This document shows, one piece after another, positions 523-53,920 of a stretch of 64,000 nt of DNA. This DNA comes from Eutreptiella sp. 'Long Island Sound 2002'. Its lineage: Eukaryota > Protista > Euglenida. Position 1 is the stretch's first letter. Each line of letters opens with the position of its first letter. Under the pieces are notes generated by a model. It was not told where the DNA came from. It worked only from the letters and a program-made list of their open reading frames with translations, and did not search any database. The stretch is from assembly GCA_964036045.1 (NCBI GenBank), contig OZ038378.1, forward strand, positions 141,360,001 to 141,424,000. Reading direction: 5' to 3'. The translations under genes and the position numbers were made by a program.

Positions 523-3456
523 TCAGCTGTGTGGTTGGGGTTCAAACAATTCAGTACATGCCATGTGCAAAGAGAAATTTGCTGCAAAAAATCTTCCTTG
601 GTAAAATGTTTTGGCAAATGCTATAATTATGGCACGACGGCTTTTTTCGTAGGCAACCCTCGGAGGGTGGGGGGCGGGGGAATGCAATTTTTTTCCAGGC
701 ACGCAGTTTTTTTCCAACCTCGCCCCTTGGGCCTGCGTTGGCCAATTGCCGCGTGCTTACCTGCGTTGGATGTAGACCCTCTGCCCTCAGCCCACACGGC
801 TCTTGCACCGAGTACGAGGGCACGGGGCGCTGGGAGAAGCGACATTTTTGCTTGGGGGAGGGGGGTAGCCAAATGACACGCCCCACATCACTCCGCTCCC
901 TCCCAAAGGCGCCCCAGCTACTAGAGCCACGTGGCGGCTCATCACAGGCCCACAAATGCAACACGGATCATGGGGCGACAGGTTCCCTAACCTCCCATTG
1001 CCCTTCTCTGAAATGGCTCCGTCACCCCCTGGTCGAGTGGGGGAAGCCTGAAATGGCTGAATAACCTCCCCTGTCCTGGGGGGGTCGCCAAACTGGGGAG
1101 GAGTGATGAGGGTGTCCAAAGGGAAGAGTAATGATGTGGCATATGCAGCCATGCACAAAAAGTTCCTTTGGGTGCCTTTGCTGCCTGTGGCCCAGCTTGC
1201 TGTGGCTGGACACCCCCCCTTGGGGCGGCGGGGGGGGCGGGGGGGGGGGCGCTTCCTGGGAGTGGTACAGCCCACACCCCACCCCACCCCACCCCACCGC
1301 CGGAGCAGGTGGGTCTTGCCTATACATCCAAACCCCACCTTTGGTTGCGGCAACACCCTCGTCCCTCTTTCCATTGTTGCAATCCTGTCCACATAGGCGC
1401 AGATGTACAGACCTCAAGTATGCAGGGCTCTCTGGTCCCCAAGAAGTGTGAGTACAGCGTGTAACTCACGTCCTCCAGCCACTCTTGAACACATGTGTGA
1501 AACTCATGGGCCCGTTTGTATCTGCAGCACATCCATGACACAGCGCAAGGGGACGAGGCACGGGCACGCGGACATTGGTGTGTGTTTGTGTGTGTGTTTG
1601 GTGGTGGTGGAAGCGGGGCTTATTAAGGAGGGACACTGGCATGGGTCACCAGGGTGAGAGCTCAGAGGAGACCACCGCCCATGAGAGGGGCAGCAGGGCT
1701 GCTAGAAGACCCAGATCCCTGGACCTGGCCCCTCACCTTGGTCAGAACCTCCCCTGATGCAGAGCCTCCATCCCAGCACAACTGTGGCACACCCTGGTGG
1801 CGTCCTCTGCAGACACTCATCTCCGCTTGGGCAGTGGCTGACCTCACACCCGCACACCCCAAGTCTACCAGTGCAGCATGCTTGCTAGCTGCCTCCTGCC
1901 TGTTGGGATGCTGCTGCGGCAGGGCTGCCTCCTCTTGGCTGCCGGTGTGTGCCCCAGGGTTTTACGGCTGACAAGCTGGCATAGCGCTGCGGTACGTCTC
2001 ACGGGTGTTGGTCGCAGGTGATGGGCATGTCCCCTCGAGCAGCAGTGTGCAACTTCCCAATACAGTGCATGCTGCTCCCTGGGGCCGAGGGTGTAGCTCA
2101 TGCACAAATATTTGTCGCAGCCATTTCCGGGCCTACAGATGCATTGCCTCCCAGGGTCCAAATCTGGGGAGAAGACCAGCGATCTGCTCCCCCCCCCCAT
2201 TGTTTGTTTATGTGGGCGGTCGTCTTAAGGAGGGCACAAGCCTCTTAAGATCTAGCACGCTCTTGTGCCAACAGGGCCGTCATTCCAAGGAGAAAGTTCC
2301 TGTGACGGTCAAACAGGCTCTTCCTCCAAGGGGGAGGGGTCCACGTAGAAAGTAGCCTTGTGGCTCAGTGTTGGCCAACCCACCGGTGCGCCGAGAAAAG
2401 CCATCCCTCAGCCCCCCGCCCTCCCAGCCAACTCTCCAGTGTAGAAAGAGAACCTCTTGGCTAGTTTAGGCTGCGTGCACTTCCTTCCGCTTGCCCATGG
2501 CCTAGTTGCCCACCTTGCCCACCGCGCGGCAAGTTGTAGCTATAAGGCGACAAGAGCCCCCTCCACTTACTGCATTGACAAGGGCCGCTGGTGCCATGGC
2601 TCGGCACAAGCACTTACATATTTCTGGGCGCTTACACATGTGCCATGCCCGAGGGCCAACACCGTCGTGTCGGTGGCCAAAGCGCTGGAGGCCATGTGGC
2701 CCATAAACACCACAAAATACAAGGGCCCAGGCTAGCAGTGGCCCCACGCTAGCACATACCTTCACCGAGATAAAGAGTCAGCTCAGCGAGCATCGCCGGC
2801 GCCTGCTACCGCATTCACCTTCTCTCCAACACGCAACATATGCCTGAAGCCATCTCTCCTGCTAGACACTTTCCGTTCTTGTGGGTACATTCATCGTCCT
2901 TGACCTTTCCATCCTCCATTATCACCGAAGCTATCGCTTTCACCACAACTTGTGGCACAGATTGCTTTGGGAGGCCCTTGGATTGGGTGTGGAAGCAACG
3001 CTCACAACCGAGTTGATTCATTTGCAAAGAACAACATCCCTATAAGCCTTGGGGGGGCGACTGCTCGGTTCTGGACGCCAACTACCCCCCCCAACTAATT
3101 GTTGGCCATAGGCCCAACGGGGGGGGGTTCTGGGAGGGGCGATGGGGGGGGGGTTTGGGGGGGCTTTTGCCCCGGGGGGGGGGGGGGTCCGGGAGGGTGG
3201 GTTTGGGGGGGGGGGGGGCAGGTGGGGCGATTTGGGGGGTACATGCCCCCAAGGCCAAGCGTTGGTCCATCACAGGCCCCCTGCCTCCCCTTGCCCTCCC
3301 TCTAACCATACCATCACCCTAACCTTTGCAGCAAACTGGTTCAGCCATACCAGCCATGTTAATTAGGCTGAACAAGATCCCCCAAAGTTCGTTCATGGCT
3401 ACTTTTGCCACATCATTGTTCTCCATTTTGGACCCCAACAATAACTTTGACCCTAG

Positions 3457-3494
3457 CCTAGGGTTAGAGCTAGGGTTAGGGTTAGGGCTAGGGT
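3457..3494 (+). repeat. Degenerate telomere-like (TTAGGG) tract inside MITE, left of insertion
   Basis: ctagggttagagctagggttagggttagggctagggt. Confidence 0.85.
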
Positions 3495-4628
3495 CACCGA
3501 GCTGGTGGAACCAGTCTTGGTTTTATAACCCTTTTTAGTGTCTAGGGTAGACCTACCAGGTTTAGCAGCAAGCAAGCAAGCAGCAAGCAGCAAGCAGCAA
3601 GCAAGCAGCACGCGCGAAATGGGGAAAAATCAGAACTCCGTCGTGGTGCTTCAGATTCGACTGAAATTTTGGTGCATGATACCTATGGGTGTGAAGTACA
3701 ATCACACAAAGTTTGAGCAAGAAACTCAACGGTGGTGGCTGGGAACGGGATTCGCAAGTGGCGGACCTCGGTTTCAAAAACTGCAGTTTAGGGCCAAAAA
3801 CAGCCATTTTTGGGCCAAAAAAAGCTCTAGAACACACTCAAAACGGCCAAACGAAGGGAAACGGTGGGTACACCCCACGTGCGGCTTGACTTCCCCGTGT
3901 CAACGAGCCCTTTGCCGCCCTCTAACTCCATGATATGTCCCGGAAACGGCCCAAAAAGGCCCCCCGAAGCTCCAAATGCCGATAGCCACAAACCAAGAAT
4001 AGACCATATCTTTGGCTACATGGCTCAAAATGCGATTCCGAGGGCACCTACTCCACCCACAACCCCCCACTTTTTGTGGTTTCCACCCCTCCGAATTGCC
4101 CAAACGGACACCTAGACCCCAATACCTAGGCCCACTAGGCTGCGGCAAGTTGCAAGCTCAAGCCCAAACACGTGGGTACCCAAATGGGTCAACAGGGTCC
4201 AATAGGGGCAAAAAGATGACTTTTCTCAAAAATGATCCTAGACCATGTGCGATGCTAAAACAAGTGTTTTTGGACCGTTTTGAGCTTGGGGGGGGCGATT
4301 TTGGTCCTCTAAAAATCCCAAAATGCCTTGAAAATGGGTTGTTTTGGGTCCAAAAATGGGTCAAAAATGGGTCAAAAACACATTTTTCCAAACCTCATCC
4401 TGGACCATTTGGGGTGCACAAACGGGTGAAATGAGCCCATTTTGAGCCCATTTTGGGGCATTTCGGCCCCTCGAAAGTCCAAAAAGCCTTGAAAGTGGGC
4501 CTCGTGGTGATGGGGTTCGCTTGCAAGCTGATTTCACTTTGTCAAGTGTGAATCATTCTTGATGTCCCTCACCAGTCATAGCAGATGTTCCCTCCCCCAC
4601 CAGCTCGGTCCCAATATTCAGTCTTGAT
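3495..4628 (+). mobile_element. Asymmetric-TIR non-autonomous element, unit 1 (Helentron/Helitron2-like architecture)
   Basis: 5' accgagctggtgg (3496-3508) pairs with 3' ccaccagctcggt (4597-4609), which lies 19 bp from the end. A gcaa-type microsatellite lies near the 5' end. Flanks are gggt | taggg with no TSD. Confidence 0.75.
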
Positions 4629-4640
4629 TAGGGTTAGGGT

Positions 4641-5767
4641 CACCGAGCTGGTGGAACCAGTCTTGGTTTTATAACCCTTTTTAGTGTCTAGGGTGGACCT
4701 ACCAGGTTTAGCAGCAGCAAGCAGTAGCAAGCAGCAAGCAAGCAGCAGCACGCGCGAAATGGGGAAAAATCAGAATTCCGTCGTGGTGCTTTGGATTCGA
4801 GTGAAATTTTGGTGGATGATACCTATGGGTGTGAAGTACAATCACACAAAGTTTGAGCAAGAAACTCAACAGTGGCGGCTGGGAACGGGATTCGCAAGTG
4901 GCGGACCTCGGTTTCAAAAACTGCAGTTTAGGGCCAAAAACAGCCATTTTTGGGCCGAAAAAGCCCTGGAACACACTCAAAACGGCCAAACGAAGGGAAA
5001 CGGTGGGTACACCCCACGTGCGGCTTGACTTCCCCGTGTCAACGAGCCCTTTGCCGCCCTCTAACTCCATGATATGTCCCGGAAACGGCCCAAAAAGGCC
5101 CCCCGAAGCTCCAAATGCCGATAGCCACAAACCAAGAATAGACCATATCTTTGGCTACATGGCTCAAAATGCGATTCCGAGGGCACCTACTCCACCCACA
5201 ACCCCCCACTTTTTGTGGTTTCCACCCCTCCGAATTGCCCAAACGGACACCTAGACCCCAATACCTAGGCCCACTAGGCTGCGGCAAGTTGCAAGCTCAA
5301 GCCCAAACACGTGGGTACCCAAATGGGTCAACAGGGTCCAATAGGGGCAAAAAGATGACTTTTTTCAAAAATGATCCTAGACCATGTGCGATGCTAAAAC
5401 AAGTGTTTTTGGACCGTTTTGAGCTTGGGGGGGCCGATTTTGGTCCTCTAAAAATCCCAAAATGCCTTGAAAATGGGTTGTTTTGGGTCCAAAAATGGGT
5501 CAAAAATGGGTCAAAAACACATTTTTCCAAACCTCATCCTGGACCATTTGGGGTGCACAAACGGGTGAAATGAGCCCATTTTGAGCCCATTTTGGGGCAT
5601 TTCGGCCCCTCGAAAGTCCAAAAAGCCTTGAAAGTGGGCCTCGTGGTGATGGGGTTCGCTTGCAAGCTGATTTCACTTTGTCAAGTGTGAATCATTCTTG
5701 ATGTCCCTCACCAGTCATAGCAGATGTTCCCTCCCCCACCAGCTCGGTCCCAATATTCAGTCTTGAT
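4641..5767 (+). mobile_element. Asymmetric-TIR element, unit 2 (chimeric)
   Basis: Same termini as unit 1. Separated from neighbours by tagggttagggt at 4629-4640 and 5768-5779. Period 1139-1146 bp. Confidence 0.8.
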
Positions 5768-5779
5768 TAGGGTTAGGGT

Positions 5780-6928
5780 CACCGAGCTGGTGGAACCAGT
5801 CTTGGTTTTATAACCCTTTTTAGTGTCTAGGGTGGACCTACCAGGTTTAGCAGCAGCAAGCAGTAGCAAGCAGCAAGCAAGCAGCAGCACGCGCGAAATG
5901 GGGAAAAATCAGAATTCCGTCGTGGTGCTTTGGATTCGAGTGAAATTTTGGTGGATGATACCTATGGGTGTGAAGTACAATCACACAAAGTTTGAGCAAG
6001 AAACTCAACAGTGGCGGCTGGGAACGGGATTCGCAAGTGGCGGACCTCGGTTTCAAAAACTGCAGTTTAGGGCCAAAAACAGCCATTTTTGGGCCAAAAA
6101 AGCCCTGGAACACACTCAAAACGGCCAAACGAAGGGAAACGGTGGGTACACTTCTCGTGCGGCTTGACTTCCCCGTGTCAACGAGCTCTTTGCGGCCCTC
6201 TAACTCCATGATATGTCCCGGAAACGGCCCAAAAAGGCCCCTAGAAGCTCCAAATGCCGACAGCCACAAACCAAGAATAGGCCATATCTTTGGCTACATG
6301 GCTCAAAATGCGATTCCGAGGGCACCTACTCCACCCACAACCCCCCACTTTTTGTGGTTTCCACCCCTCAGAATTGCCCAAACGGACACCTAGACCCCAA
6401 TACCTAGGCCCACTAGGCTGCGGCAAGTTGCAAGCTCAAGCCCAAACACGTGGGTACCCAAATGGGTCAACAGGGTCCAGTAGGGGCAAAAAGATGACTT
6501 TTCTCAAAAATGATCCTAGACCACGCGCGACGCTAAAACAAATGTTTTTGGACCGTTTTGAGCTTCTGGTGGCCCATTTTGGTCCTCCGAAAATCCCAAA
6601 ATGCCTTGAAAATGGGCTGTTTTGGGTCCAAAAATGGGTCAAAAATGGGTCAAAAACGCATTTTTCCAAACCTCATCCTAGACCATTTGGGGTGCACAAA
6701 CGGGTGAAATGAGCCCATTTTGAGCCCGTTTTGAGCCCATTTTGGGGCATTTTGGCCCCTCAGAAGTCCAAAAAGCCTTGAAAGTGGGCCTCGTGGTGAT
6801 GGGGTTCACTTGCAAGCTGATTTCACTTTGTCAAGAGCCATCAATGTGTGAATCATTTTTTATGTCCCTCACCAGTCATAGCTGATGTTCCCTCCCCCAC
6901 CAGCTCGGTCCCAATATTCAGTCTTGAT
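5780..6928 (+). mobile_element. Asymmetric-TIR element, unit 3
   Basis: Same termini. The 3' half carries diagnostic substitutions and indels relative to units 1 and 2. Confidence 0.8.
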
Positions 6929-7050
6929 TAGGGTTCAGGTTAGGGCTAGGGCTAGGCTTGGGGCTAGGGGTAGGGGTACGGGTAGGGGTAGGGGTACGGG
7001 TAGGGGTAGGGGTAGGACTAGGTTGAGGGTTGGGGTGGGTGTTAGGGTCA
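6929..7050 (+). repeat. Expanded G-rich telomere-like tract (potential G-quadruplex)
   Basis: tagggttcaggttagggctagggctagg...ggggtaggggtacgggtaggggtagggg...; longer than the equivalent tract in the copy near 58100-58170. Confidence 0.8.
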
Positions 7051-10000
7051 GGTTGGGTTTAAGGATAGTGCCGGGGTGCAAAGTGGACAAAATTTTCCTT
7101 CGGGCGGCTTTGGTGCCCATGGAGCGTCGGGCGGCTTTGGCGCCCATGGACTACTGAGGGCGACACCTTTGGCAACCAACTGTTGGCCCGAGGCCCCTAG
7201 GGGGGGGGGGGGTAGTTGGCGTCCAAGGACCCGCGGAGTCGCCCCCCCCCCCCCCCCCCCGTGCCTATAAGGTTGTGGACTGCCTTTGGGCCACGTGTGT
7301 GCTCTCCTATGTGGCTTAAGTTGTGGCCCGTACTGTCCGCTCGGTCACCCTTCTTGGGCATCTTGTGGTGTTGCCCTTGGTTCTCATGTTGTTGTCATCG
7401 AAGTGCTTGCACCATCTCGTGTTAGTAGTTTGTCCTGGTGCGACCGTCCCCAAGGATGTGGTGTTTTCAATCCCTATATGTCTCTTGCCTTGCTAAACTT
7501 TGAGGCATGATTCTTGCAACTATGCCCCAACTAGGACCCAATGGGCAGCAAGCAAGCCTCACATCCTAGGATGGAACCCCTAGAGGACAGCCAATTGTTG
7601 TGTGTTGAAGTACCCTCATGAACATCATGCAAGCGGTGGAACAAGTTAATATGGGGTATGCGTTGTGGGGATGAGGGGGCCAATACATACATATCATATA
7701 TCATATCAACCATATATGCCCATTGTGTTCTCTTTCTAGGTGGCAAAGGGAGAACCCACTCATTGACACCTTTGGCGGCACAGCACGTTGCCCATTGAGG
7801 ATGTGTTGAGGCACGCGAAGTGCACATGAGCAACTTGGGGGGAGGGGTATTTGTGTAACATACTGAGGGCATAGCGATGGCAGTAGGCGCTACAAGGCCA
7901 AATATATTTTGTAGGAATTTACTTCATAGTTTTGTTTGGATTCTGCCCTTCACTCCTTGCCTTCCTCCAAAATCACCATGGAAGGGTGAGATTCCCTACC
8001 ACAGTTTGCACATTCAGCTAGGGCCGTAGCCTCTCCTTTGTAGAGAGCAATGGCGCCAACATATCAATGCGCACACCCTGCTTGGTGCCATTTTTAAAGG
8101 CAAATATTGCATATGGCTGGTGAATTGTCCCCTTTCCTTTCTGCACTAAGTGTCACTATTTCTGTGGTTCAAGGGACTTGTTCTCGGCCTACGGCGCTTG
8201 TGGCACATGTGGCGTGTAGGATGAGCCCCCTAAGGGTAAGGGATCATTCAAACAACACATTTGACCGGCAAAACAACATGGGTACCTTAGCCCCCATGGG
8301 GACCCACGTAGGATACACGCACACTTCTGTGTGTGTCTTTGAATTGCCCTTGTGTGAGATTGCATTGCCTTTGCTACCCCAAATCCCAATACCTCTCCCC
8401 ACGCTTAGATATCACCCTCACTCCCAGCCACTCGCGCGGGTTGCACAAGCCCTCTCTCAATAGCCTCCCTCTAGGCCACACAACATGGCACAAACTTCGC
8501 TGGACGCTGGACGTTGTCGCCCTAACGGCGTTGATGCTCATTATGTAGTCGGAGGTGACCAAGTTTGCTCACACTGAAGCCCTTGCAAACTGAGCTGCTG
8601 CACAAGACTAGCCCCAAGACCATGGCAATCCACCATGTGCATGGCATCCATAGCCACCCCTTGTCCGTGGGGGGCTGAGTCTTTTGGCATTAGACATAAA
8701 GGGGTGCAGTGTGTATCCCATGGTTCCACGAGGAGGTATGGCCACAATGCATGATGGCATGGTGGTCAACTATTGGCGCAAGGATGACATTCGGCGATGG
8801 CTCTACGGAGGAACAGAGAACCAAAGAAAGGATGCAAGCAGGCTTGGAAGAAAAGGCAGAACGACGGATCATTGCCACGAATGTTGAGCGCATGTCCTTG
8901 TGAAGCAGGAGCAATAAGACAAAAGCTTCACAAATAAAGGGAGAGAAGGATAAGCAAAAATGAATGAGAATCAACCGGAAGAAAGCTCCTTTTTGTATGT
9001 TTCCACTGGCACCAATAGACCGATTTACAGCTTCAGTGCGGAGTCTTGTGCATCTAGGGGGTTACGAGTAAGGTCTCCCTCTTGCCACACAACCTTGTAA
9101 ACCAGTCAAATGCCGGAAATGCTGCAAGGAACAAACTACATTGATGCCAACTTCCTTTGGGGAAACAGCTGCCTCACCCTTCTTTGTGGCTTCTAGTGCG
9201 ACTGCAGCAAGCTTGGAAGCGCCTAGGTGCGGTCCTTGACCCCAATACCCCTGAAACGTTTTGGCCCTTTGAAGGGGGTGGGGGTAGGGGTCATGGGGAG
9301 TGGAGTCTGACCAAAAATCACCAGTTTCTTTGAACCACCGTGGTGTCCAGGCATTATTTACACCCTCGTACCCCGTGTAGCCACCTTGTGGTCTACTCAC
9401 GCCAAAATCAACCTTGTTGATCATGTCATAACGATCTCCACTCATGTCCTTTATCATAAACCTTGCCATGAACAAAGTGGTAGGGTCCCGGTGAAGGGGT
9501 TAGCATACAACAACGGAGGTCTCCACTCTCCTCGCCAGTGTCACGGTGGTTGTAGCCACCCACACCCCCTGCCGGAGGGGGGGGGGGGGGGGTTGACAGT
9601 ATAGAGACCTCTTTGGCACGGCCCGCACCAAAGATGGTGCCCACAGGGTGCCCAAGCCCGCGAGGTCGTTTCGACCGTTTTCGACCGTTTTGTGCTTCCT
9701 ACCACCATCTCAATGGGTGCCCAGTTCCGTGAGCTGCGTTTTGTGGTAACTGTGGGACAAAAAGAGCAGAACAAAGTAAAGTATATGTATGATGTACACC
9801 GGAAGTAGCCACACAACCCCTGCCTTCGCGAGGGTCCCCAATAAGGGGGTGAAATCAAAGTGGCTGCGTAACCTGTGCCTTCTCAGGGTCCGCAACAAGG
9901 GACCGGAATCAGAAGTGGCTACTCAAATCGTGCCTTCTTGGGGGGGGGGGGCAGAGAAAATGTCAGCGACCCAATGCAACATGCGAAGGGAAGAACGGGT

Positions 10001-13000
10001 GACTGTCCAGGGCCCTGTAAAGATACAAAAACCAGACGGAATGTCACACAGAGGGTAACCAAGAGCGAAAGAGGCACCCACCTTCCTGAAGGAACAGGCA
10101 ATCCCCAGGGGGCAGGGCGTATGCTCCACTCAGCAGAGGCCTGTCTCACGTACACCACATAAACCCCCACATGCGCGCGCACACCCAGCACACCCCATGC
10201 ACACCCTGACAATGGGATGCCATACCTGTGCCCCATGTCGTCGCGCTGCAGCAGTTGAAAGACTGCGGGGCCATGACGCGCATGATAATCTGCAGAGGAT
10301 GTTATGGGCAGGGCAGGTCAGGAATTAGGACCCGCATCGCATGATTCAGTGAGCAGGACCAGTCACTGGGAGTGCGGCTCAGTGTGATTCCTATACAACA
10401 GTCATTAAACTCGATTCCAATGTTCCTGATCTCGCGTGGGATTTCAAAAAGTTCAGGTTTGCGCATTAAAAACAACGAAGTAAACAGATGAAAATATTCA
10501 ATCTTCTTCAGAATGCAAAACTGAAATATTGAAGGACTAAAGAGTAGCTCAATTTCTCCTAAAACTGAGAGAATTATAAAAACATGTGCCTATTGATCAT
10601 TTGGTGGTCCCTATCAGTCGAAACAGAGAAAAAGACCAAAGACCGGTAAATGGCTTGGTTTGATTTTATCCATCTAAAATGAGTCCAGTGACTGTGGTGT
10701 ATCTGGGCATCTGAACGCGCCGGCATCAACTTGTGAGTACGCCCCAGCGGTGAAGCTGCACACCAGATCGCCGCATTGTTGGGTCCATATCATCCGCATC
10801 CCTCGTCCTATCTGATCACACATCAGATGTGGAAGGGTTCGTCCTAGTCGCACTGCAAGTAGAGGCCAGCCCTACTCGGTTCACACATGGTTGCGTGGAT
10901 GGGTGTCTCAAACCCAATGTGCCGGCCCTACCTACGTGAATTGGCCCGGGCTGTGTGCTCTCTACTGTCCCACCCAACTCAACAAAGAGTGGCGCAAGTG
11001 GGTTCACGGTGCGTCGAGTGTGGGGGTGTGGGGTGTTTGGTGTGAGTTTTTGTGTGCCATGTGTGACGTTTGAGATGAGATGTGTGGTGCGTGGTGTGGT
11101 GTGTGACGTGTAATGTGGGAAGCCAGCGATGGATACGGATGCCACAAGCGGGAGTGAGGGGAGAGGGTCGTACCTTTGACTTTGAGTGCACTTGAGTGCA
11201 CAAGGTCCTGCATTTTGGGGCTCAGCTGCAATGAACATTCCATAATGTTGCCGGTGGCTTTGGGGCTGTCGGCATCCTGAAACTCCACAATCATGGACAC
11301 GTTCCGGGAGCCCCTGGAAAGCTCCCCCATGGTGTTGTAACTGGCGGGCCTTCCTTCGGAGCTGGGACTCATGACCTGCACCTCAGGTTCCTGGTGCCCC
11401 CGTGGTGAGACAGGGTCTCCCCGTTCGGTGTCTGTGGAAGCACTGCACAAGGACGTGGAACAGGCATTTCACAATTACCCATCAGGTCAGGAGGCGTTGC
11501 ATGTGGGATCTGGCAGATCAGGCAGCAGAACACAGAAAAAAAGAAAAAAAAGAAAAGAAACTCGAACATATGCTCTAAATGGCTCAAAACAAAATTAAAC
11601 AACTTACAAAACATCTGCCAGCGAAAGCACGGTGCAAAACATGCAAAAACCGGTCGCAAACAAAAAAATCAACACCATAAAACGCAATTAAAAACATCGT
11701 CATTGATATGCTTGTCATGCACGTACCTGTCTTGTAGTCAGTGTTGTCACGTAGCTTGAGAAAACCATGCCGCGAGCACCGAATAGGATGAGATAGCACC
11801 AGAAAAGCACCAAACAACAACAAAAAGGGCAAGCAAGCACACAGCGCACTGGTGCAGCACAGCACACAGCACAGCACCGACATCGACACACATGACCCGC
11901 CCTGCCCTACCAGATTTGTGTATACTTCTCCATGTACCACTCCCTTTCCCCTTGTTGCCTTGCCCCCGCCTGTGCCACTATCAGCAAGAACACAGATCCA
12001 TTCAACCAATGGACCCAAGCACAGGGTACAACAGCTCTAGCCCCCCTTAGGACTGAACAGCCCCCCAGGCTATGCCTACAGGCTGCACCACTAATGGTCC
12101 AGCCATGGCGGTTGCAAGTGTGGGCACCCACTCCTAACGGCAAGAGGCAATGGGTTCGCCTAAGCAACAGGATTCCTCCCCTGACTCCATGCTTCCATGG
12201 TTGGGGGAGTGGGTCACCATAGTCACAACAACCAAAAATCAAGGCTGCTTGTGAGGCCACCAACACTAGATAGGAGCCGGGAGACAGGTGACTGGAAATC
12301 CCCAGCAACTCACTGGGGTAGATCACTTCCATGAGCCCCTAACACCCTGGTCGAGCAGGGGCTCCAAGTGCTACGGAGTGTAGCACACCATCGGGTCGGC
12401 CCAGTGCCACTCCATTGAGCAACCGGTGGTCACTCCAAATGCTCTCCGCAAAGGGCTAAAGGGGTGTGAAAATTGCAGAAGCCTCAGCAAAGGCGTAGGT
12501 GGCCTGGTGTGCTTCAAGTAGTAGCAACAAGGTCAGCCTAGAATCCCACGTCAGCCTAGAATCGCACAAGTAAAGTTGCGAGGATGGGTCCATGCCAGCC
12601 CCCTAGGTCAGTAAGGGTACACAGTGGGGCATAGCTCCCCCCACCTCCTCCTCCAACCCCAAGGTGCCATGGCTGAGCGAACTTTTTACTTCCACACGAA
12701 TTCGCGATATGTACCCACAGTATTTGAACCACGGATATGCATTTGATCGCGAACGGCACCAATTGTGCGCAAATGGTTACCATAATGCGCATTCTTCAGA
12801 CTGAGGACTGCATTACGCATTGTATCCAACAATTGATTGGACCACGTCGCAATGGGCCGCAATGGGCATCAACATTGTCATCGATCCACTTTTGCAAGGC
12901 TTGCATGGCGATACAAGGGGGCACGAGAAAGAGAGGACGGAACAGCCCACTGGACAATCTGGGGGTCGAAAAAAGATACGCATGTAGGAAGACTACAAGC

Positions 13001-14190
13001 TCTATTGGGCTTTGCACCTGTCACATGCAAAAGGGCATATTACCCCGGTGTATACATACACTTTGTGAATGGTATTTCGCTTAGCACGCTTTACAAGGGG
13101 GTTGGGCATCGCGACTCCACACTGATGAGGAGCCCCGGGCCTTCCCGGTCATCGGTTTTCTTTTTCCCCCTCTCCGGCTGGAATATTGAAGTTGCACACA
13201 ACTGCCGGTTGGGGTTGGAGGCCAGTGCATACGTATGGCCGTAGCAACTTGAGGTGGTGGCCTTGGACCACACAGTGCCAGGCTACAAGCACCTCTCCCG
13301 GCTTACACCACACATTCAATGCACAAGCTTGACCTCCAAACTAGCAGTGTTGCTTTGCAATGGAGATGTATTAGCCACATTTGAGCAAAAAAGAGTGTTA
13401 TGTGGTGTTACCGGGTGGTGGGTGGTGCGGCCTCACACTCGGACCCAAAATTCGTCTCGTGGGAAAAATTGCCACCCATACCCCCCTTGGGGGTATGATG
13501 CGGGGGGCAGCCAACACAGTGTCACGGCCACCCCCCCACTAGGCAAAGGCGCTGGGGCCCAAGGTAACCCATGACCTCATTGTCTGTAGGAGGGTTAGGG
13601 TAATCAATTGCTAGCACGCATGCACATGGGGTTGCCGAGGTGAGCTTCCGAACTACATACGTACAACACAAAACAAGAGCAACGGTGCTTGGGTTATCCA
13701 CGCCCCACGATATGTGCACCTAAAGACGAAAAAATGGATCGGAGGGTGCACTTGCATGAGGGGAAATCATGATGAAAACATGACTGGGCACCCCATTGTG
13801 CACATGCACATGTTACACATCGGCAAAGAGGAAGTGTCACACACATAAGAGGGGGGAAAGTGAAGCCGGAGGTTGAAGGTAACCCCCAGAAAGTCCAATT
13901 AGCATAGCGGCCTAAAATAGAAAATGCACTTTCATTGTCGGTCCCCCACATGCACTGCACCATATCATGGGTCTGTGGCTCTTCACCCTTGAATGACGAA
14001 TAAGCTCCTTCGTCAACTCAAGGATAGAGAGTCCAAAACATCCAAGCAATAGTACATTGCATGTGTATTCATAGGGTATCATCCATGCCCACGGGACTCG
14101 GTGTGGCCAATTTCTTCGTGTATGCTTCGATGCCATTCGCAGAGCATCGCTGAAGGACACTATTGCATGCACGAAGAGCAAAAAGAAAAT

Positions 14191-17100
14191 GCCTTCTCGG
14201 GAGCCCAAAAGAGGGCGGAGTGCTCGTCATTCCTGCATCCTCCGGGACCCCCAAACAAAGGGGTACAAAGTGAGAAGTGGCTACCTCACCCCTGCCTTCT
14301 CGGGGGCCCAAAAGAGGGGAAAAATGCTATGTCACCTTTGCATTCTTGGGGATCCCCAAACGAAGGGGGACAAAATTAGTGGTTGCCTCACCCTGCCTTC
14401 TCGGGGGCCCAAAAGAGGGCAGAAATGCTATGTCAACCCTGCAGTCTCGGGGATCCCGAAACAAAGGGGGACAAAATCAGAAGTGGTTGCCTCAACCCTG
14501 CCTTCTCAGTGGCCCATAAGAGGGCAGAAATGCTACATCAACCCTGGATTCTCAGGGTACACCAAACAAAGGGGGATAAAATTGGAAAGGGGCTACCTCA
14601 CCGCGGCCTTCTCGAGGGCCCAAAAGAGGGCGGAAATGCTACGTCACCCTTGCATTCTCGGAGATCCCCAAACAAAGGGGGACAAAATCAATGGCTGCCT
14701 CACCCCTACCTTCTAAGGGGCCCAAAAGAGAGCAGAACTGCTACACCACCCCTGCATTCTCGGGGATCCCCAACGAAAGGCGGACAAAATAAGAATTGGT
14801 TGCCGCACCCCTGCCTTCTTGGGGGCCCAAAAGGGGGCGGAAATGCTATGTCACCGCTGCATTCTCGGGGATCCCAAAACAAAGGGGGACAAAATCAGAA
14901 GTGGTTGCCTCACCCATGCCTTCTCGGGGGCCCAAAAGAGGGCGGAAATGCTACGTCACCCCTGCATTCTCGGGGGTCCCCAAACAAAGGGAAGACAATC
15001 ACAAGTGGCTGCCTCACCGCTGCCTTCTCGGGGGCCCAAAAGAGGGCGCCACCCCTGCATTCTCAGGGATCCCCAAACAAAGGGGGACAAAATGACAATT
15101 GGTTGCCACAGCCCTGTCTTCTGACTGCACGGGTGACATAGCATTTCCGCACTCTTTTGGGCCCCTGAGAAGGCAGGGTTGAGACAACCACTTTTAATTT
15201 TGTCCCCCTTTGTTTGTGGATCCCCGAGAATGCAGGGGTGACATAGCGCTTCCGCCCTATTTTCGGCTCCTAAAATGGCAGGGGTGAGCAGCCACTTTTG
15301 ATTTTGTTCCCCTTTGTTTCGGGGCTCCCCAAGAATGCAGGGGTGATGTAGCATTTATGGCCTCTTTCGGGCCCCCGAGAAGGCACGGGTGAGGCAACCA
15401 CTGATTTTGTCCCACTTTGATTGGGGATCTGCAAGAATGCAGGGGTGGCGTAGCGTTTGTGCCCTCTTTTGGGCCCCGGAGAAGGCAGGGGTGAGGTAGA
15501 CACTTCTGATTTTGCCCCCCTTTGTTTGGGGATCTCGGAGAATGCAGGGGTGATGTAGCATTTCCGCCCTCTTTTGGGCCCCCGAGAAGGCAAGGGTGAG
15601 GTAGCCACTGATTTTGTCCCCGTTTGTTTGGGGACCCCCGAGAATGCAGGGGTGACATAGCATTTCCGCCCTCTTTTGGGCCCCCAAGAAGACAGGGGTG
15701 AGGCAACCAATTCTGATTTTGTCCCCCTTTGTTTGGGGATCCCCGAGAATGCGAGGGTGGCGGCATAGCATTTCCGCCCTCTTTTGGCCCCCGAGAAGGT
15801 AGGGGTTAGGCAGCCACTTGTAATCTTCCCCCTTTTGTCTGGGGACCCCCGAGATTGTAGGGTTCACGTAGCACTTCCGCCCTCTTTTGGGCCCTCGAGT
15901 AGGGGTGAGGTAGCCACTTATAAATTTGTCACCCTTTGTTTGGGTATCCCCGAGATTGTAGGGGTGACGTAGCATTTCCGCCCTCTTTTGGGCCCCCGAG
16001 AAGGCAAGGGTTAGGCAGCCACTTCTGCGTTTGCCCCCTTTTGTTTGGGGACCCCCGAGAATGCACGGGTGACGTAGCATTTCCGCTCTCTTTTAGGCCC
16101 CCATAAGGCAGGGGTGAAGCAGCCACTTCTGATTTTTTCCCCTTTTTTGGGGGATGCCCGAGAATGTAGGACTGATGTACCATTTCCCCCCTCTTTTGGG
16201 CTCGGGGATCCCCAAACAAAAGGGGTCAAAATCACACTGGCTGCCTCACTCGTGCATTCTTGGGGGCCCAAAAGAGGGCGGAAATGCTACGTCACCCTTG
16301 CATTCTCGGAGATCCCCAAACAAAGGGGGACAAAATCACAATTGGCCACCTCAGCCCTACCTTCTCGGGGGCCGAAAAAAAGGCGGAAATGCTATGTCAC
16401 CCTTGCGTTCTCGGGGATCCCCAACCAAAGGGGGACAAAATCAGAATTGGTTGCCTCACCACTGCCTTCTCGGGGGCCCAAAAGAGGGCGGAAATGCTAC
16501 ATCACCTGTGCATTCTCGGCGATCCCCAAACAAATGGGGACAAAATCAGAAGTGGCTGCCTCACCCCTGCCTGCGCGGGGGCCCAAAAGAGGGCGGAAAT
16601 GCTACATCACCCATGCATTCTTTGAGATCCCCAAACAATGGGGGGCAAAATCACAATTGGCCACCGCACCCCTGCCTTCTCGGGGGCCGAAAAAAAGGCG
16701 GAAATGCTATGTCACCCTTGCGTTCTCGGGGATCCCCAAACAAAGGGGGACAAAATGAGAATTGGTTGACTCACCACTGCCTTCTCGGGGGCCCAAAAGA
16801 GGGCGGAAACGCTACATCAACCATGTATTCTTTGAGATCCCCAAACAAAGGGGGGCAAAATCACAATTGGCCACCTCACCCCTGCCTTCTCGGGGGCCGA
16901 AAAAAAGGCGGAAATGCTATGTCACCCTTGCGTTCTCGGGGATCCCCAAACAAAGGGGGACAAAATGAGAATTGGTTGCCTCACCACTGCCTTCTCGGGG
17001 GCCCAAAAGAGGGCGGAAACGCTACATCTCCCATGCATTCTCCGAGATCCCCAAACAAGAGGGGACAAAATCATACTTGACTACCTCACCTTTGCCTTCT

Positions 17101-17695
17101 CGGGGGCAGAAAAAAAGCGGAAATGCTGTGTCACCCCTGCGTTCTCGGGGATCCCCAAACAAAGGGAAACAAAATGAGAATTGGTTGCCTCAGCCCCGCC
17201 TTCTCGGGGGCCCAAAAGAGGGTGTAAGTGCTATGTCACCCTTGCATTCTCGGGGATCCCCAAACAAAGGGGGACAAAATCACAAGTAGCTGCCTCAACC
17301 TTGCCCTCTTAGGAGCCCAAAAGGGGGCGGAAATGCTACGTCAACCCTGCATACTTGGGGATCCCGAAAAAAAGGGGGACAAAATAAGTGGCCGCCTCAC
17401 CCCTTCCTTCTCGGGGGCCCAAAAGGGGGCGGAAATGCGATATCACCCCTGCATTCTCGGGGATACCCAAACAAAGGTGGACAAAATCAGTGGTTCCCGT
17501 GCCCCTGCCTTCTCGGGGCCCAAAAGAGGGGGGAAATGCTACGTCACCCATGCATTCTCGGGGATCCCCAAACAAAAAGGGACAAAATCAGAAGTGGCTA
17601 CGTCACCCCTACGTTCTCGGGGGGCCAGAAGAGGGCGGAGATGTTGTGTCACCCCTCCATTCTCGGGCGCGGGGACAAAATCAGAAGTTGCCCAC
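14191..17695. repeat. 105-bp satellite array (about 33 units), with an inverted central block at about 15124-16200
   Basis: Landmark ccca/ccga recurs at 16267, 16372, 16477, 16582, 16687, 16792, 16897, 17002 and 17107 (exact 105-bp spacing). The block 15124-16200 reads as the reverse complement. Confidence 0.95.
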
Positions 17696-17749
17696 AACTG
17701 GGCACATCACCTACAGGCATGCATTTTCACTAAAATCGGTAGGTTTTTT

Positions 17750-18015
17750 TTATGGGGTAAACGCGTGTAGGAAAAAATCGTCACATGGTGCAATTTTTTT
17801 TCGCGGTAAGTCGTGTAATTGTTTTCTGCGGTAAATGCGTGTAACAAAAAAAAAATCATCACGTAATTTCTTTTGCGGTAAACGTGTGTACAAAAAATCG
17901 TCTAGTCGTGTAAATTGGTTTTTGCGGTAATGCGTGTGACGGGCTTACACGACTTACTACCAAAAGAAATTACACAACTAAACTACTTTTTTGTTACACG
18001 CATTTACCGCAAAAA
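17750..18015. repeat. AT-rich motif cluster with inverted arms
   Basis: gcggtaaatgcgtgtaacaaaaaa (about 17828-17851) is mirrored by ttttttgttacacgcatttaccgc (about 17987-18010). Several degenerate gcggtaa-cgtgt copies lie between. Confidence 0.7.
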
Positions 18016-18304
18016 AAAATATACACGAATTACAACATACACGATGAGGAGGCGTTGCGCAATAATTTTGACCATTGGGATTTGGGGTCTCAGAACCCTT
18101 CACCCTATTTGTAGGTCCACTAGCATCAGTTTTATGCTATTTTCCGCTATCTTTGAACCATTCCCCGGAACAAATCTTATCAAGTGAGTGCTTTACTGAG
18201 ATAAGGTCTGTAAAGAGTTTCTTTATGGGGGGTGGCTGAAAGCACTCCTAGTGTCCCTCAACATGCGTCCTTATTCAGCCCCTTTTACCGGTGTACCCGA
18301 TTTC

Positions 18305-18343
18305 CCCTCCCCCACCAGCTCGGTCCCAATATTCAGTCTTGAT
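18305..18343 (+). mobile_element. Orphan 3' terminus of the asymmetric-TIR family
   Basis: ccctcccccaccagctcggtcccaatattcagtcttgat is identical to the last 39 bp of the 3.5-6.9 kb units and is followed by tagagggtt. The upstream sequence is unrelated. Confidence 0.85.
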
Positions 18344-21300
18344 TAGAGGGTTGTAAAGGGTCATAAGGGCTTCGGTCACTCGGTCGGCCGCATACGTACT
18401 TGAGATGCATTGCATTAATTCTTGATTTTTTTATTTTCTTATTTCTATGTTTCTCAATGATGTAGTGGTACGTGTGTTGTGTGTTTTCCTTTTTTTCTGT
18501 TGAGTTAGCGAGCGAATACAAATTTTCGTGCTTTCAATGGGTATGTGAACATTGTTTGGTATGGGCAGCTGGCCAAATGTTACAATATGAAGCATCAAAA
18601 AAACATCTTAAAAACCTGTTGTTCCACCACTGAGCCTTTCACCTTATAGAAATATCCACTCTCCATAACAGTGACCACAGATGCCCGCAACTGACCGACC
18701 TGGTTGACCGTGGTTGCAGTTCGTTGCTGTCTGCCCCTTGGGTCCCATGCATCCTCTCCCACATGCATGAAAATGTGCATTGTTGCAACGCATCTGGCTT
18801 CGAGGCTCTGACTTGTTCTCAGCCCCTCTAGTGCCTTGATACTGGCATTTCCTGCTCCCTTTCCAACCTACCTCTATTGGTAGTGCAGAAAATAGCTTGC
18901 AAATGCTCCCATTCATCATTATTTATCATCTTTGAGGGTGCCCACGGGCACACATGGCAATCCATTATAGCAAAAGAACATGGGGCAAATATAAGGCGAA
19001 AAATGGCTCAAAATAGCCTTAACCACTTGTTTGAGCAACCCAGATGGTCTGGGAACAACTTGGGAAAAAATCGTTCTGGACCACTTTTTGACCTACAACG
19101 AACCTTGCTTACCCTACCCTAGCAGGTGTGGTGCCCATGGGGTATTGAAGCGTGTTAGGGGTGCAAAAATAGCTTGCAAACGCTCCCATTCATCATTATT
19201 TACCATCTTGAGGGTGTCCAAGGGAAGAGGTAGCTCCACCCTAGACCCTGGAGAGGGTTCTGAAACCTTACTAGTTCCACCACCTCAGTGAATGCCTCTA
19301 TAATCCTCTACAACCCTCTATAATGCTATCTACCCTTGAAACCCCTCTACAGCCCTCTACAACCCTCTACAACCTTCTGCAACCCTCTATGCCAACAACC
19401 CTCCACAACTGTCTACAACCCTCTTGTCCCTCTACAACCAGCTCTAACCACCTTCAACCCTCTAACGACCATCCACAACCCTCTCCAACATTCTCTGACC
19501 CTATCGAAATTCAACCAACACAATTGTCATTGCACAGCTGGCTCATTGCTCGCAAGGTACCTTCAATTGGAAAGGTGGGACGGGAAAAGGAAAAGGAGGT
19601 TCGATGATAGTTGGGATTCGGAGAGACCTAGTGGCATCGTCGTTATCCTTGTCGGTGTCCATGCCACAAGCCATACGCAGGGCCTTGCCACGTGCCGCAA
19701 ACAGGTTGTCAAAGCGAAATGCAAGCTGCGGGGGAACGTACATACCCCCGCCTCCCCCGCGACAGTACCGCAGGGGGCCGGCCGGCAAAAGGGAGAGCAG
19801 TGCGGCGCGACTGGGAGTGTGGGTGGTCGGCAGGCCCTGCGTGTCATCCAACGTCCAGCTGCAGAGAACAGGAAAACCATGCAGGCAAGGGCTCATCAGG
19901 GATTGTCAAGAAGCATGACTGCAAGCACCAAGTGCCCCCCCGTGCAGTGGTGCCACAAAGACCAGGTACCCCCCACACATGTGCTGACCTGCATCAATGC
20001 ATGAATGCTCACTTCACTGGCAGCTGCTGTGAAAGGAACAAAGATGTTCCTGTGCAATTCTGATTTTCACTTTCGCCTGAACCCCACCCCCTTAAGTCCC
20101 ACTGCACCCAAAGTCAGATGGGTCAAATGCGCCCTCCACCACTGGGGAAGAAGGCCTACCGGGAAGATGCTATCTTGATTGGGTAGACAGCAAGTGTATC
20201 AAACCATGAGGTTGTATACTACAACCATTCACTCAAATTGTGCAGCGAGTGTGACAACATCGGTTGTGTGCTTGTACATCGATTTTTGCCGAGACTCTTA
20301 GTTCAGCAATGGCCCCACCTACCTTGCTATTTCCCCCCAAGATAGAGCCCTTCATTCATGACATTCAAAAATCCTTGATTTAGAGGGTGTCCTCAACATG
20401 GTACACACACACACACACATTGTGTGCACAAGCATTGTGCACCAACAGTATACCCCTTGTGCACCCGTTGCACAATGATGTAGAGGCGTTCATGGGTGCA
20501 CACAAGTGTGGTAACCTGCATGTTGTCACGCTGCAGGGTATGTTTTTGGGTTGGTGTTATGTGTGTGTCCTCTTAGGTGTGTTGCTCTGTGCGCCCCGCC
20601 CCACCTGAGCATCTCAGGGCCCTTGAATACATTGCCTTTTTGCACTAGTGGCTGACTAGTGCAGGCGGGTTCAGGGCTTCAATAGAGTCTTATCTTAACC
20701 ATAGTCGGCCATTTGGCTATTTGACTCTATCGTAGCTGTGTTGTGCACTCTGTGTGGTGGGTTGTGGCGAGGTTGCCACATGCGCCCTTTTTAGGCCATT
20801 GCCAGAGTTATGCTCTGATTCAAATTTGTTATTCTACATTTTTCCTACCATACATTGACAAGTGGAGGGTATGTGCCCCAAGCAACAGCCAAGCACGAGG
20901 TGATGTGTGCTCCCATGCCCATCTGATGCAAGAGTTTGGCCGTCTTTTGCACAAGTGTGCCACACATGGTTCGTTTGCCCATTTGTATGGTTATTGTACA
21001 TCTGCACTATTTACGTGGTTTGTATGATTGAGTTCATGCGGAACGATATGGCGTTGAGTGCGGTAGACCTCGACCGCTTTTGACGTAAGCCACCGTCACA
21101 TTCATGTACCCATGTGTCGTATGTTGTGGCATGGAGTACAATGACTGCATGTTGAGAACTACAGTTCCATATTCTGGTAAACCCACCTACGCTGCTTATG
21201 AGTGATGTTGTGGCATAGGATGGCGGATGGTTGCAATCCAACGGGCCATCGAGTGCTATTTTGTGTGGTGTTGAAGGATGGGAGGGCCTAGGAGGGCATG

Positions 21301-45897: not shown

Positions 45898-47426
45898 TAC
45901 CTTGGGGGGGCGGGTGGCCCACACGGCCAGTGCGCACAAGCAAGATCTGTGCTTGGGATTGCTTGGCGAGGAACAAGGAAATTGAGGACATGCTGGACAT
46001 ATTGAGCGAATTAAAAGCAGAATAAAATCGTGCTGCAACTTGAAGTGCATCCTCTGTGAACCGCCCGGAAACACACACGACCACACACATCATTTCTCCG
46101 CATCGGCCTGCTCACAGCCCTTGGGGGCACCTATGGCCTACAGCCCGGAATCCATCATAGTTATATGGGCCCGTTTTGGGGACCTTTTTGAAGGCTTCGG
46201 GGCAGGGGCCAAAAGAAACTCAATACCCCGCAAAGGACCATGGGTTTGGTAAGTGGTCTGGCAATCGGTTCGAAAAACATCCCCTTCTAGTGGCAAAATG
46301 GTCTTTTGCCAGGTGCCAGAGGTGGCCTCGTCCCAAACCCTCCAACTTGCTTCCTCCCGCATAACTTCAGTGTCGTGGGTTGCTGCAAGAGTAGCCCGGA
46401 TGGCACTGTGGATTGTTGTCTAGGGTGGCTCACGGAAGGCATCATTTATAACGACGCGCAGAACTTCAAAGGGGACATGGGTGTAAAATAGGGGGGGGGG
46501 GCTGGAAGCTTGCGGTTACAACTTTTTTGGAACGTTTTTGATGCCCACCTCCTGAAACCATGTCTAAACGCCTGCCTTTGTCCACTTTTAGGTCCCTTAT
46601 CAAGATGTCAAGGTGCGTGGACAAAATGGATGTCAAAAACAGAAAATGCGATCGCAGTTGTTCATGTGAGTCATTAGCGAATGTGCGGTCAGTATCATAT
46701 TGTAAATCTGGGCCAGTGATGCATAAATTCTTGTATTGAACCCCATACGAGGTTTCATGCTAGCTGGGCATGGTTTTGCCTACAGCCTGGCATGTGGTCA
46801 CCAGAGGAATTCTACTCTTGGGGGGTTGAGTGAACTTTCTATGCATTAATGTGGCCAATGGCGTGTCCTTGCCATAATAGCATATATTTTTGGTGCCACC
46901 TTATCCAAAAAACCGGGCAACAGGCGGGGTTCAATTGTATCTGATGGGTTGTGGTGCAGGCGCAGTGCATCCACAGCATGTTGGAGCTTAGACTGGATCA
47001 CTGGGTTCCGGAAGCTCAACATTTGCTGAATGAGAATCTATGAGGTCCCCCTCAAAGGTAAGATCTGAGGCGGAGGCGGAGGGGGAGGGGGGAGGGGGGG
47101 CGCGGAGGATGCAGTTCCCTGGCTACCCCTTGACATTTTCCAATCTGTTGAAAGGGGAAAGGCGGTGGCACAAAGGACATCCGACTTGGGGGTGCAAAGT
47201 TGTGGTGGGGTGTAAAAAGGGCAAGCCGACATGGGAAAAAAAGCTTTCTTTGTTTTGTGGCTACGTGAACACACACTTCTACTCCTACGGCAGTCACAAA
47301 ACCGGGGAAGTGGCCGGTGCTAGGGGCGGCGATCACGAAAGGATCTCTGCCAATCGAGACTAGGCAGACAGGCACACAACAGTCCTATAGAGTGGAAATG
47401 TAGGGCGCAGCAATAGGCTTTGTGTT

Positions 47427-47670
47427 CACCAAGCTGGTGGAACCGGTGTTTCTTTTATAACTCTCGTTAGTGTCTAGGATGGACCGAACAGGTTTGGCAA
47501 GCAAGCAGCAAGCAAGCACGCGCGAAATGGGGGAAAAGCACATGTCCGTCGTGGCGCTTCGGATTCGGCCAAAATTTTGGTGGATGCTACCTGTGGGTGT
47601 GAGGGACAACCCCACAAAGTATGATCTAGAAACTCCACGGTGGCGGCCGGGAACGGGCGTCGCAAGTATG
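47427..47670 (+). mobile_element. Diverged 5' portion of the asymmetric-TIR family
   Basis: caccaagctggtggaacc...gcaagcaagc...cgcgcgaaatgggg...gggaacggg aligns with 3495-3750 and is preceded by gtgtt. No matching 3' end was found. Confidence 0.8.
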
Positions 47671-49640: not shown

Positions 49641-49899
49641 CTGCAAGGAAGACGGCAAGGACCATGCTTTCCATGAGGATGAGATCAGGTGCACGGTGGA
49701 CACTAACTGTATAGGGGTCCTAGGAAGCCAATAAACTCAAGGGCGGTCCAAAGTGGTTGGTGTACATTGTACACCCTGTGAACAAACATTTTGTACCCGT
49801 GCCACACTCCAAATAACAAAGGGTGTTTGGCCATACCCTGCCGAAATTCTATTGCCTTCGGCAAGTCCACCTCACAGAGAATCTACCGCGAGCAACACA

Positions 49900-51270: not shown

Positions 51271-51470
51271 NNNNNNNNNNNNNNNNNNNNNNNNNNNNNN
51301 NNNNNNNNNNNNNNNNNNNNNNNNNNNNNNNNNNNNNNNNNNNNNNNNNNNNNNNNNNNNNNNNNNNNNNNNNNNNNNNNNNNNNNNNNNNNNNNNNNNN
51401 NNNNNNNNNNNNNNNNNNNNNNNNNNNNNNNNNNNNNNNNNNNNNNNNNNNNNNNNNNNNNNNNNNNNNN
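51271..51470. other. Assembly gap (200 N)
   Basis: Run of N in the sequence. Confidence 1.
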
Positions 51471-53896
<2,426 letters not shown>

Positions 53897-53898
<2 letters not shown>

Positions 53899-53920
53899 TC
53901 TAATGTACACCCCTCTCCCC
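53897..53920 (-). mobile_element. 3' terminus of another member of the (TA)n-inserted asymmetric-TIR family, opposite orientation
   Basis: cctctaatgtacacccctctcccc is the reverse complement of the 53157-53180 terminus with two mismatches and abuts (TA)n. The interior is different. Confidence 0.8.

Follow-up and report, generated by a model that had tools for sequence, protein, structure and literature searches.

What are the three units of about 1.1 kb that stand head to tail in TTAGGG-like DNA at positions 3495-6927 of the stretch studied here, and how did they come to be arrayed there? The stretch (the window) comprises 64,000 nt of the euglenid Eutreptiella sp. 'Long Island Sound 2002' (GenBank assembly GCA_964036045.1, contig OZ038378.1, positions 141,360,001 to 141,424,000 of the forward strand), and a first-pass annotation made from its letters had described the units as a non-autonomous mobile family of rolling-circle type. 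Our results showed that the array is an insertion in the telomere-like tract of a host repeat and that the preference of its family for telomere-type repeats is strict in orientation and hexamer phase. The units are probably a high-copy non-autonomous Helitron2/Helentron element, similar to HINE and DINE-1, with hexamer-phase target specificity.

Architecture of the units

Counted from CACCGAG to CTTGA, the three units were 1133, 1126 and 1148 bp long (Table 1), unit 3 having two insertions of 11 nt that are lacking from units 1 and 2. The 5' bound of the unit starts with TCACCGAGCTGGTGG and its 3' bound is CCACCAGCTCGGT plus a tail, and the terminal motifs of the family were defined as TCACYRAGSTGGTGGAAC at the 5' end and CCACCAGCTYGGT plus the tail at the 3' end. 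The 5' motif had 9 matches in the window against 1.8 expected from shuffled sequence, and the 32-nt 3' end motif had 4 matches against 0 expected. Every unit contained an inverted repeat that was exact over 13 nt (100% complementary), with the 5' arm at the tip, the 3' arm subterminal and a tail of 18-19 nt closing the unit, and this asymmetric arrangement was kept in about 25 units of other loci. A microsatellite was found about 70 nt from the 5' end of all three units, and the units were separated by identical 13-nt spacers of (TTAGGG)2 type. The head-to-tail units of about 1.14 kb with such spacers, the inverted repeat with its inner arm about 19 bp inside the 3' end and the 5' microsatellite had been proposed in the first-pass annotation, and all of them were confirmed.

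The unit is non-coding. Its open reading frames (ORFs) had no Pfam match, none of six unit ORFs was present in the protein collection on exact look-up, and Rfam gave 0 matches to the unit, both at the gathering score and with E relaxed to 1, hence no hammerhead ribozyme and no head of the tRNA, 5S or 7SL type. The first 42 nt of the unit folded better than shuffles (z -3.1), with an AACCA/TGGTT palindrome beside the inverted-repeat arm that was not kept in sister subfamilies, and the very 3' end formed only a 3-bp TCA/TGA mini-stem. In the tandem context, the two arms across a unit junction can pair as a 13-bp stem (z -5.3) because they are an inverted repeat. Compensatory change from arm to arm was considered as well; complementary variants were observed across subfamilies (GAGGTGG vs CCACCTC) and none within single units, which gave it no support.

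Insertion into a host repeat

The sequences flanking the array (3250-3494 and 6928-7330) are parts of a repeat with another copy at 57885-58330, where the degenerate TTAGGG/CTAGGG tract runs on uninterrupted and holds no element; the left flank was 90% identical to this copy. Because an empty copy of its host repeat is present in the window, the array is an insertion in the telomere-like tract of that repeat. The target tract here was short and degenerate (36 nt). Joining the two flanks left one T in excess and no longer target-site duplication, so that the absence of a duplication, as first annotated, held apart from this one ambiguous T. The bounds may be drawn in either of two ways, as TCACC...CTTGA inserted at GGG^TTA or as CACC...CTTGAT inserted at GGGT^TAGGG.

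The host repeat, about 650 bp long, is also a dispersed element, present in the window at 3119-3494 plus 6929-7330 and at 57667-58330, and in other loci at L003 3396-3870 plus 6196-6475, L004 6204-6484 plus 10988-11106 and L007 about 16200-16400. It contains G-rich repeats of 29-31 nt, its left side carrying a C-strand-like telomere motif and its right side a TTAGGG-like tract of the G strand, and it was the source of most interstitial TTAGGG tracts among the loci examined. Three of its copies were filled by arrays (in the window, L003 and L004), and the two at window position 58100 and L007 position 16367 were empty.

Junctions and target rule

The junctions were surveyed in eight loci, namely the window, two JGI metagenome contigs and five contigs of ENA assembly ERZ25074135; six of these loci were chosen from cluster matches to a spurious frame near the 5' end of the unit and were pooled with the window and the JGI contig L002. 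Among the 5' junctions, 27/29 lay in TTAGGG-like tracts and 25 ended exactly in GGGT, while 25/26 of the 3' junctions started TTAGGG-like and the remaining one lay in a TTAGAGGG/TTGTAAAGGG-type repeat. A single orientation was found throughout, every copy having the G-rich strand on its own strand, and all 19 spacers measured 6n+1 nt, with a range of 7-109 nt, in arrays of 2-11 units. In a subfamily with the terminus CCTGG in place of CTTGA, the position of the junction was unchanged. The preference for telomere-type repeats, which had been suggested only as possible, is thus strict in orientation and hexamer phase. The family is mobile and non-autonomous as first proposed, its termini coinciding with the element boundaries in every other copy examined. 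Target-site duplications, flanks lacking TTAGGG enrichment and termini lying off the boundaries, each of which had been named beforehand as speaking against such a family, were not encountered, and the association with TTAGGG was near-absolute in the eight loci.

The 5' boundary fell at the identical nucleotide also in flanks that are not telomeric, at 47426 of the window (...TTTGTGT) and at L010 16599. The boundary of the 47426 copy outside telomere-like DNA speaks for recognition of the end itself.

Copies of the family number in the thousands. On positions 3300-7200, one run placed 51,652 contigs and a second organism label 7,205, figures that count contigs and not copies, and one contig of a third organism label ran from the end of one unit across (TTAGGG)2 into the start of another. 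Searched with the spurious frame, the protein collection gave 626 clusters, almost all of them belonging to a single ENA assembly of long contigs; the best 120 of the 626 together comprised about 1,800 member sequences. Scanning of the JGI metagenomes with the 5' terminus yielded one real copy (L002), 92% identical and with a head-to-tail junction across a three-hexamer (19-nt) spacer, and one chance bacterial match (L001); the 3' terminus had 0 matches there, and 0 matches were found in the viral contigs and prokaryote genome contigs scanned.

Growth of the arrays

Alignment of the three units showed that unit 2 is a chimera. All 24 informative sites in columns 55-335 joined it to unit 3, and 48 informative columns between 380 and 1111 joined it to unit 1, with one site contrary. 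The first ~330 nt of unit 2 are therefore of the unit 3 type and the remainder is of the unit 1 type, with the exchange lying between about 4970 and 5012. Unit 2 had just two private changes, and the exchange is therefore recent. A dimer became the trio through a single unequal crossover, in which unit 3 of one chromatid paired with unit 1 of the other. This crossover, having produced the middle unit, also explains why the two spacers are identical, and only two founding units need insertion as their explanation. Formation of the head-to-tail array by transposition alone, which the first-pass annotation had implied, was not supported, since unit 2 is an unequal-crossover recombinant and spacers in other loci vary from 7 to 109 nt.

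Two other origins of the trio were rejected. Three separate insertions are ruled out by the chimeric unit 2. A rolling-circle concatemer is ruled out by the two parents of that unit and by the variation of the spacers among loci; variable in-phase spacers argue against concatemers, in which each 3' end would be followed by a 5' end with nothing in between.

Among 18 full units placed in a tree, neighbours were mostly not nearest relatives and the topology was largely star-like, and L005 contained both a block of four adjacent units that clustered together and two non-adjacent units that were 98.8% identical. The empty site, the dispersed arrays in eight loci and the star-like tree do not fit a plain satellite whose copies arise by local tandem duplication only; local unequal crossover contributes alongside insertion, as in unit 2. 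The arrays are the product of repeated insertion into the telomere-like DNA flanking each copy, followed by remodelling through unequal crossover.

Relatives with shared or different ends

The 3' 45-48 bp and the 5' ~250 bp of the unit were also found on other interiors. Sharing of ends across interiors is usual in Helitron families. The first-pass annotation had reported the termini on unrelated interiors at two places. This was correct for the solo 3' terminus at 18299-18343, which is identical to that of the unit at 46/48 nt and has no matching 5' end on that strand between 6928 and 18312. It was not correct for the copy at 47426, the first ~240-265 bp of which are 77% identical to the 5' part of the unit, and which does not lie in TTAGGG repeats. 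A variant family on the minus strand (19000-19291) is preceded on its own strand by a simple-repeat array.

A sister family in (AT)n repeats has ends unrelated to those of the telomere-repeat family, and its architecture is alike. The copy at 51643-53180 had an exact inverted repeat of 15 nt (51643-51657 vs 53158-53172), its arms lying at the 5' tip and subterminally at the 3' end, and its interior consisted of the unit segment 3564-3976 in inverted orientation and of four 161-bp tandem copies of the unit module 4195-4500. In the window and three ENA loci, seven 5' junctions of this family read ...ATAT(T)TA^CTACACC and five 3' junctions read GATTAGAGG^(AT)n. The variable T at the 5' junction is a known trait of Helentrons (PMC4067079).

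On the minus strand at 53897-53919, beside (AT)16, the (AT)n family had one more 3' end. In L008, two copies stand head to head at 4245-4300 with the palindrome TAATATATTA between them, and an open frame of 1089 residues (11744-15013, minus strand), which matched nothing in Pfam, is located some 3 kb away from a copy of the family.

A pair AACCCT...AGGGT, that is, the telomere-like hexamer on both strands, was observed about 35-60 nt from the 5' end in the two families of telomere-like repeats, the telomere-repeat family (3525-3560) and the 10-mer family (19232-19262, minus strand). It was mutated in two subfamily copies outside telomere-like repeats (47455-47490 and L010 16630-16665), giving four cases in total, and the (AT)n family had no analogous motif.

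Table 1. Coordinates in the window of the array, its insertion site and related elements
Feature	Position	Strand	Description
Left target tract	3458-3494	+	Degenerate TTAGGG/CTAGGG of the host repeat, ending ...CTAGGGT at the 5' junction
Unit 1	3495-4627	+	1133 bp
Unit 2	4641-5766	+	1126 bp, chimera
Unit 3	5780-6927	+	1148 bp
Spacers	4628-4640; 5767-5779	+	TTAGGGTTAGGGT, 13 nt = 6n+1, (TTAGGG)2 type
5' inverted-repeat arms	3496-3508; 4642-4654; 5781-5793	+	13 nt; units 1, 2 and 3
3' subterminal inverted-repeat arms	4597-4609; 5736-5748; 6897-6909	+	Units 1, 2 and 3
5' microsatellites	3564-3607; 4709-4750; 5848-5889	+	(AGCA/AGCAAGC)n
Right part of host tract	6928-7016	+	TTAGGG decaying into TAGGGG repeats
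Solo 3' terminus	18299-18343	+	Arm plus tail, unrelated interior, then TTAGAGGG/TTGTAAAGGG-type repeats
Variant family, 5' part	19000-19291	-	TCACTGAGGTGGTGGAAC...; preceded by (TTGTAGAGGG)n array at 19295-19489
Sister-subfamily 5' part	47426-47690	+	~240-265 bp, arm CACCAAGCTGGTGG, 3'-truncated, flank ...TTTGTGT
(AT)n sister family	51643-53180	+	5' (CAAGCAA)n microsatellite; 8-nt 3' tail
Empty-site copy of host repeat	57885-58330	+	No element; uninterrupted TTAGGG-like tract at 58100-58164

Other features of the window

Two satellites were observed apart from the family. A 105-bp satellite forms three blocks of alternating orientation (14190-17667), which are followed by a foldback-like AT-rich segment (17700-18042), and the composite recurs in the ENA assembly with 74-82% identity (L004 18971-20066). 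A 193-bp satellite with C-rich starts (49899-51132; 6.3 copies, 88% matches) immediately precedes an assembly gap (N run 51271-51470) and the (AT)n tract. At 59829-63147 on the plus strand, long frames with weak matches to RNase H (E 0.002-0.003) and zf-RVT (E 0.015) suggest a decayed retroelement of the long interspersed nuclear element (LINE) type.

Assignment of the family

Published HINE, DINE-1 and Helentron elements have subterminal inverted repeats of 13-15 nt, a 3' palindrome and microsatellites or central repeats, and are flanked by T without duplication, and Helitron2 elements have asymmetric terminal inverted repeats, palindromes at both ends and T(T/C) targets (PMC4067079, PMC13085455). 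Judged from its sequence, the family shows these features save the 3' palindrome and the coding partner, a T(T/C) target holding for one of the two possible cuts only, with the repeats represented by the (AGCA)n-type microsatellite near the 5' end of the units and by the 161-bp modules of the (AT)n family. It resembles the HINE and DINE-1 elements of arthropods and molluscs and the Helitron2 elements of Chlamydomonas (PMC4067079) in being non-coding and of high copy number, in the inverted repeat of 13-15 nt with a subterminal 3' arm, in the 5' microsatellite, the central tandem repeats, the T at the junction and the absence of duplication, and in the formation of tandem arrays and chimeric copies. 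The likeness drawn in the first-pass annotation therefore agrees with the publications in inverted repeat, microsatellite, T flanks and end sharing. The family differs from these elements in that it is confined to a single phase and a single strand of TTAGGG-type hexamers rather than open to any T-rich site, in that its 3' arm lies 18-19 nt from the end as compared with 38-60 nt in mite HINEs, and in that it has no convincing 3' palindrome.

Targeting of telomeric repeats has a precedent in the Helitron class, because Helitrons of Paramecium, published in 2026, insert strand-specifically into such repeats and carry satellites (PMC13085455). The telomere-capping Helitrons of Paramecium aurelia (PMC13085455) resemble the family in having telomeric repeats of one polarity on both sides, an absolute orientation bias and variable stretches of repeats between copies, and in being rich in internal satellites. 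In contrast to the family, they are long, encode Rep/helicase, lie at the ends of germline chromosomes and follow the C-rich strand in their orientation, whereas the units are non-coding, 1.1 kb long and oriented with the G-rich strand, and occupy interstitial tracts, mostly inside a host repeat, in thousands of copies.

Under the assignment to Helitron2/Helentron, a Rep(HUH)/Pif1-like helicase transposase encoded elsewhere would recognise the 5' tip and the 3' subterminal arm plus tail, nick one strand at GGG(T)^...^(T)TAGGG and move that strand. The strand would be rejoined without duplication, and the sole sites of rejoining would be in the G-rich strand of TTAGGG-type hexamers, always at the same phase, a limit that would account for the fixed orientation. 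As each insertion would keep TTAGGG on both sides, later copies could settle beside earlier ones, which would give head-to-tail arrays with 6n+1 spacers, and unequal crossover then enlarges and shuffles the arrays, as the trio shows. Sister families with other termini occupy other simple repeats, (AT)n and the TTGTAGAGGG-type 10-mer. The proposed link of the family to a rolling-circle enzyme is purely an architectural one.

Several results weigh against this assignment. Neither the window nor about 190 kb of related loci yielded a Rep/helicase gene with the family termini in Pfam on ORFs and in gene tables, with no Rep/helicase query used, which agrees with the remark in the first-pass annotation that no HUH/helicase gene is visible. 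Pfam gave nothing relevant on the unit ORFs and 40-odd other ORFs of the window and loci, and no Rep/helicase, recombinase or reverse transcriptase tied to the ends was found in the variants with unusual ORF lengths (L010 and L011), in the region behind 47426 or upstream of 18343. The last 100 nt folded like shuffles (z 0.05 and -0.28), so that the lack of a strong 3' hairpin, noted at first pass, was borne out. Canonical Helitrons have 5'-TC, 3'-CTRR and a hairpin of 16-20 nt about 11 nt from the 3' end, and insert between A and T; the family ends in CTTGA or CCTGG and not in CTRR, has no hairpin and uses the target GGG(T)^(T)TAGGG rather than A/T, and a 5' TC is possible (TCACC). In addition, the junctions read GGGT^CACC...CTTGA^TTAGGG, and the 55 junctions surveyed fit a T^T cut or a G^T cut alike. 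Finally, the TATEs of Leishmania, which is a euglenozoan too, insert precisely in telomeric hexamers, form tandem arrays and encode a reverse transcriptase and an integrase-type recombinase (PMC2696322).

This last precedent underlies the main rival, in which an element with a tyrosine recombinase (TATE/DIRS-like or Crypton-like) would have the units as its non-autonomous partner, and a double-stranded circle with joined ends recombines site-specifically with the telomeric hexamer. Such a process would yield scar-free, oriented and phase-locked insertions and tandem arrays, and the absence of target duplication in the family is in keeping with it. The TATEs of Leishmania braziliensis, with a reverse transcriptase and a phage-type integrase, insert within GGGTTA repeats in mid-hexamer and form tandem clusters (PMC2696322), and insertion at a fixed hexamer phase and tandem arrays were found in our family as well. 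Moreover, the joined ends of the unit consist of two arms around a short asymmetric spacer, which resembles a recombinase site and folds as described above. However, TATEs are coding, leave a TT duplication and reside at chromosome ends, whereas the units are non-coding and interstitial with at most one ambiguous T. The arms lie at least 19 nt apart and the cut falls at the edge of one arm and not in the middle, unlike the core sites of tyrosine recombinases, and the microsatellite, internal satellite and swapping of ends are typical of HINEs. No recombinase or reverse transcriptase gene was found near any copy, the sole RVT_1 gene (in L007) being unrelated to the element. We therefore regard a tyrosine-recombinase origin as rather unlikely.

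Spread without any transposase is highly unlikely. Circles of a unit and (TTAGGG)n would leave arrays by intrachromatid recombination and re-enter TTAGGG tracts by homologous recombination, in the manner of a satellite. Unequal crossover demonstrably acts on the arrays, as seen in unit 2 and in the duplicate blocks of the tree, homologous recombination between TTAGGG tracts would likewise fix the orientation, keep the spacers in phase and leave no scar, and the arrays often lie in copies of one host repeat. Nevertheless, the termini fall at the same nucleotide in the two non-telomeric flanks, the tracts that serve as targets are both short and degenerate, and units standing side by side are for the most part not closest relatives. 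The inverted-repeat architecture is also kept in the (AT)n family with its unrelated ends, and recombination needs no such structure.

Head-to-tail arrays with short telomeric-repeat separators are well known from telomere-repeat-specific retroelements. The least probable origin is nevertheless that of a passenger similar to a short interspersed nuclear element, copied by target-primed reverse transcription through a telomere-repeat-specific retrotransposon (TRAS/SART-type non-long-terminal-repeat, or endonuclease-lacking Penelope/Athena-type): LINE remnants are present in the window and the 47426 copy keeps one end without the other, but both ends are precise in about 25 full units, with no poly(A) or simple-repeat tail, no 5'-truncation series and none of the small-RNA heads or hammerhead motifs expected of Penelope-like elements or retrozymes, and the inverted-repeat architecture is unexpected from this mode of copying.

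Target choice and significance

The assignment to Helitron2/Helentron leaves room for a further idea, that the target may be set by the DNA of the element's own ends rather than by protein alone; its probability is low. In IS608, the target sequence flanking the element is the left cleavage site and is read by the element DNA. If the family behaved likewise, each set of termini would direct its own sister family to a particular simple repeat, whether TTAGGG, (AT)n or the TTGTAGAGGG-type 10-mer. By analogy, the family resembles IS200/IS605 elements such as IS608 in its strand-specific, scar-free insertion just 3' of a short fixed sequence, which then serves as the left cleavage site, and in having subterminal secondary structures rather than true terminal inverted repeats. 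The analogy is mechanistic only, since IS200/IS605 elements belong to prokaryotes, rely on a Y1 enzyme and form strong hairpins at either end. A hint toward element-guided targeting comes from the AACCCT/AGGGT pair, which tracks telomere-like targets in four cases only.

The choice of target by eukaryotic rolling-circle (HUH) transposons is poorly understood. Thousands of copies on one phase and one strand of a six-base repeat, together with sister families in other repeats, provide a natural series for finding the end sequences that determine the target. It is also apparent from the family how telomere-like tracts in interstitial positions can seed kilobase "satellites" through repeated insertion at the same site followed by unequal crossover, which is relevant to the interpretation of repeat landscapes and assemblies of such genomes. 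If targeting is indeed guided by the element, the family would represent a naturally re-programmable, strand-specific and scar-free DNA insertion system in a eukaryote.

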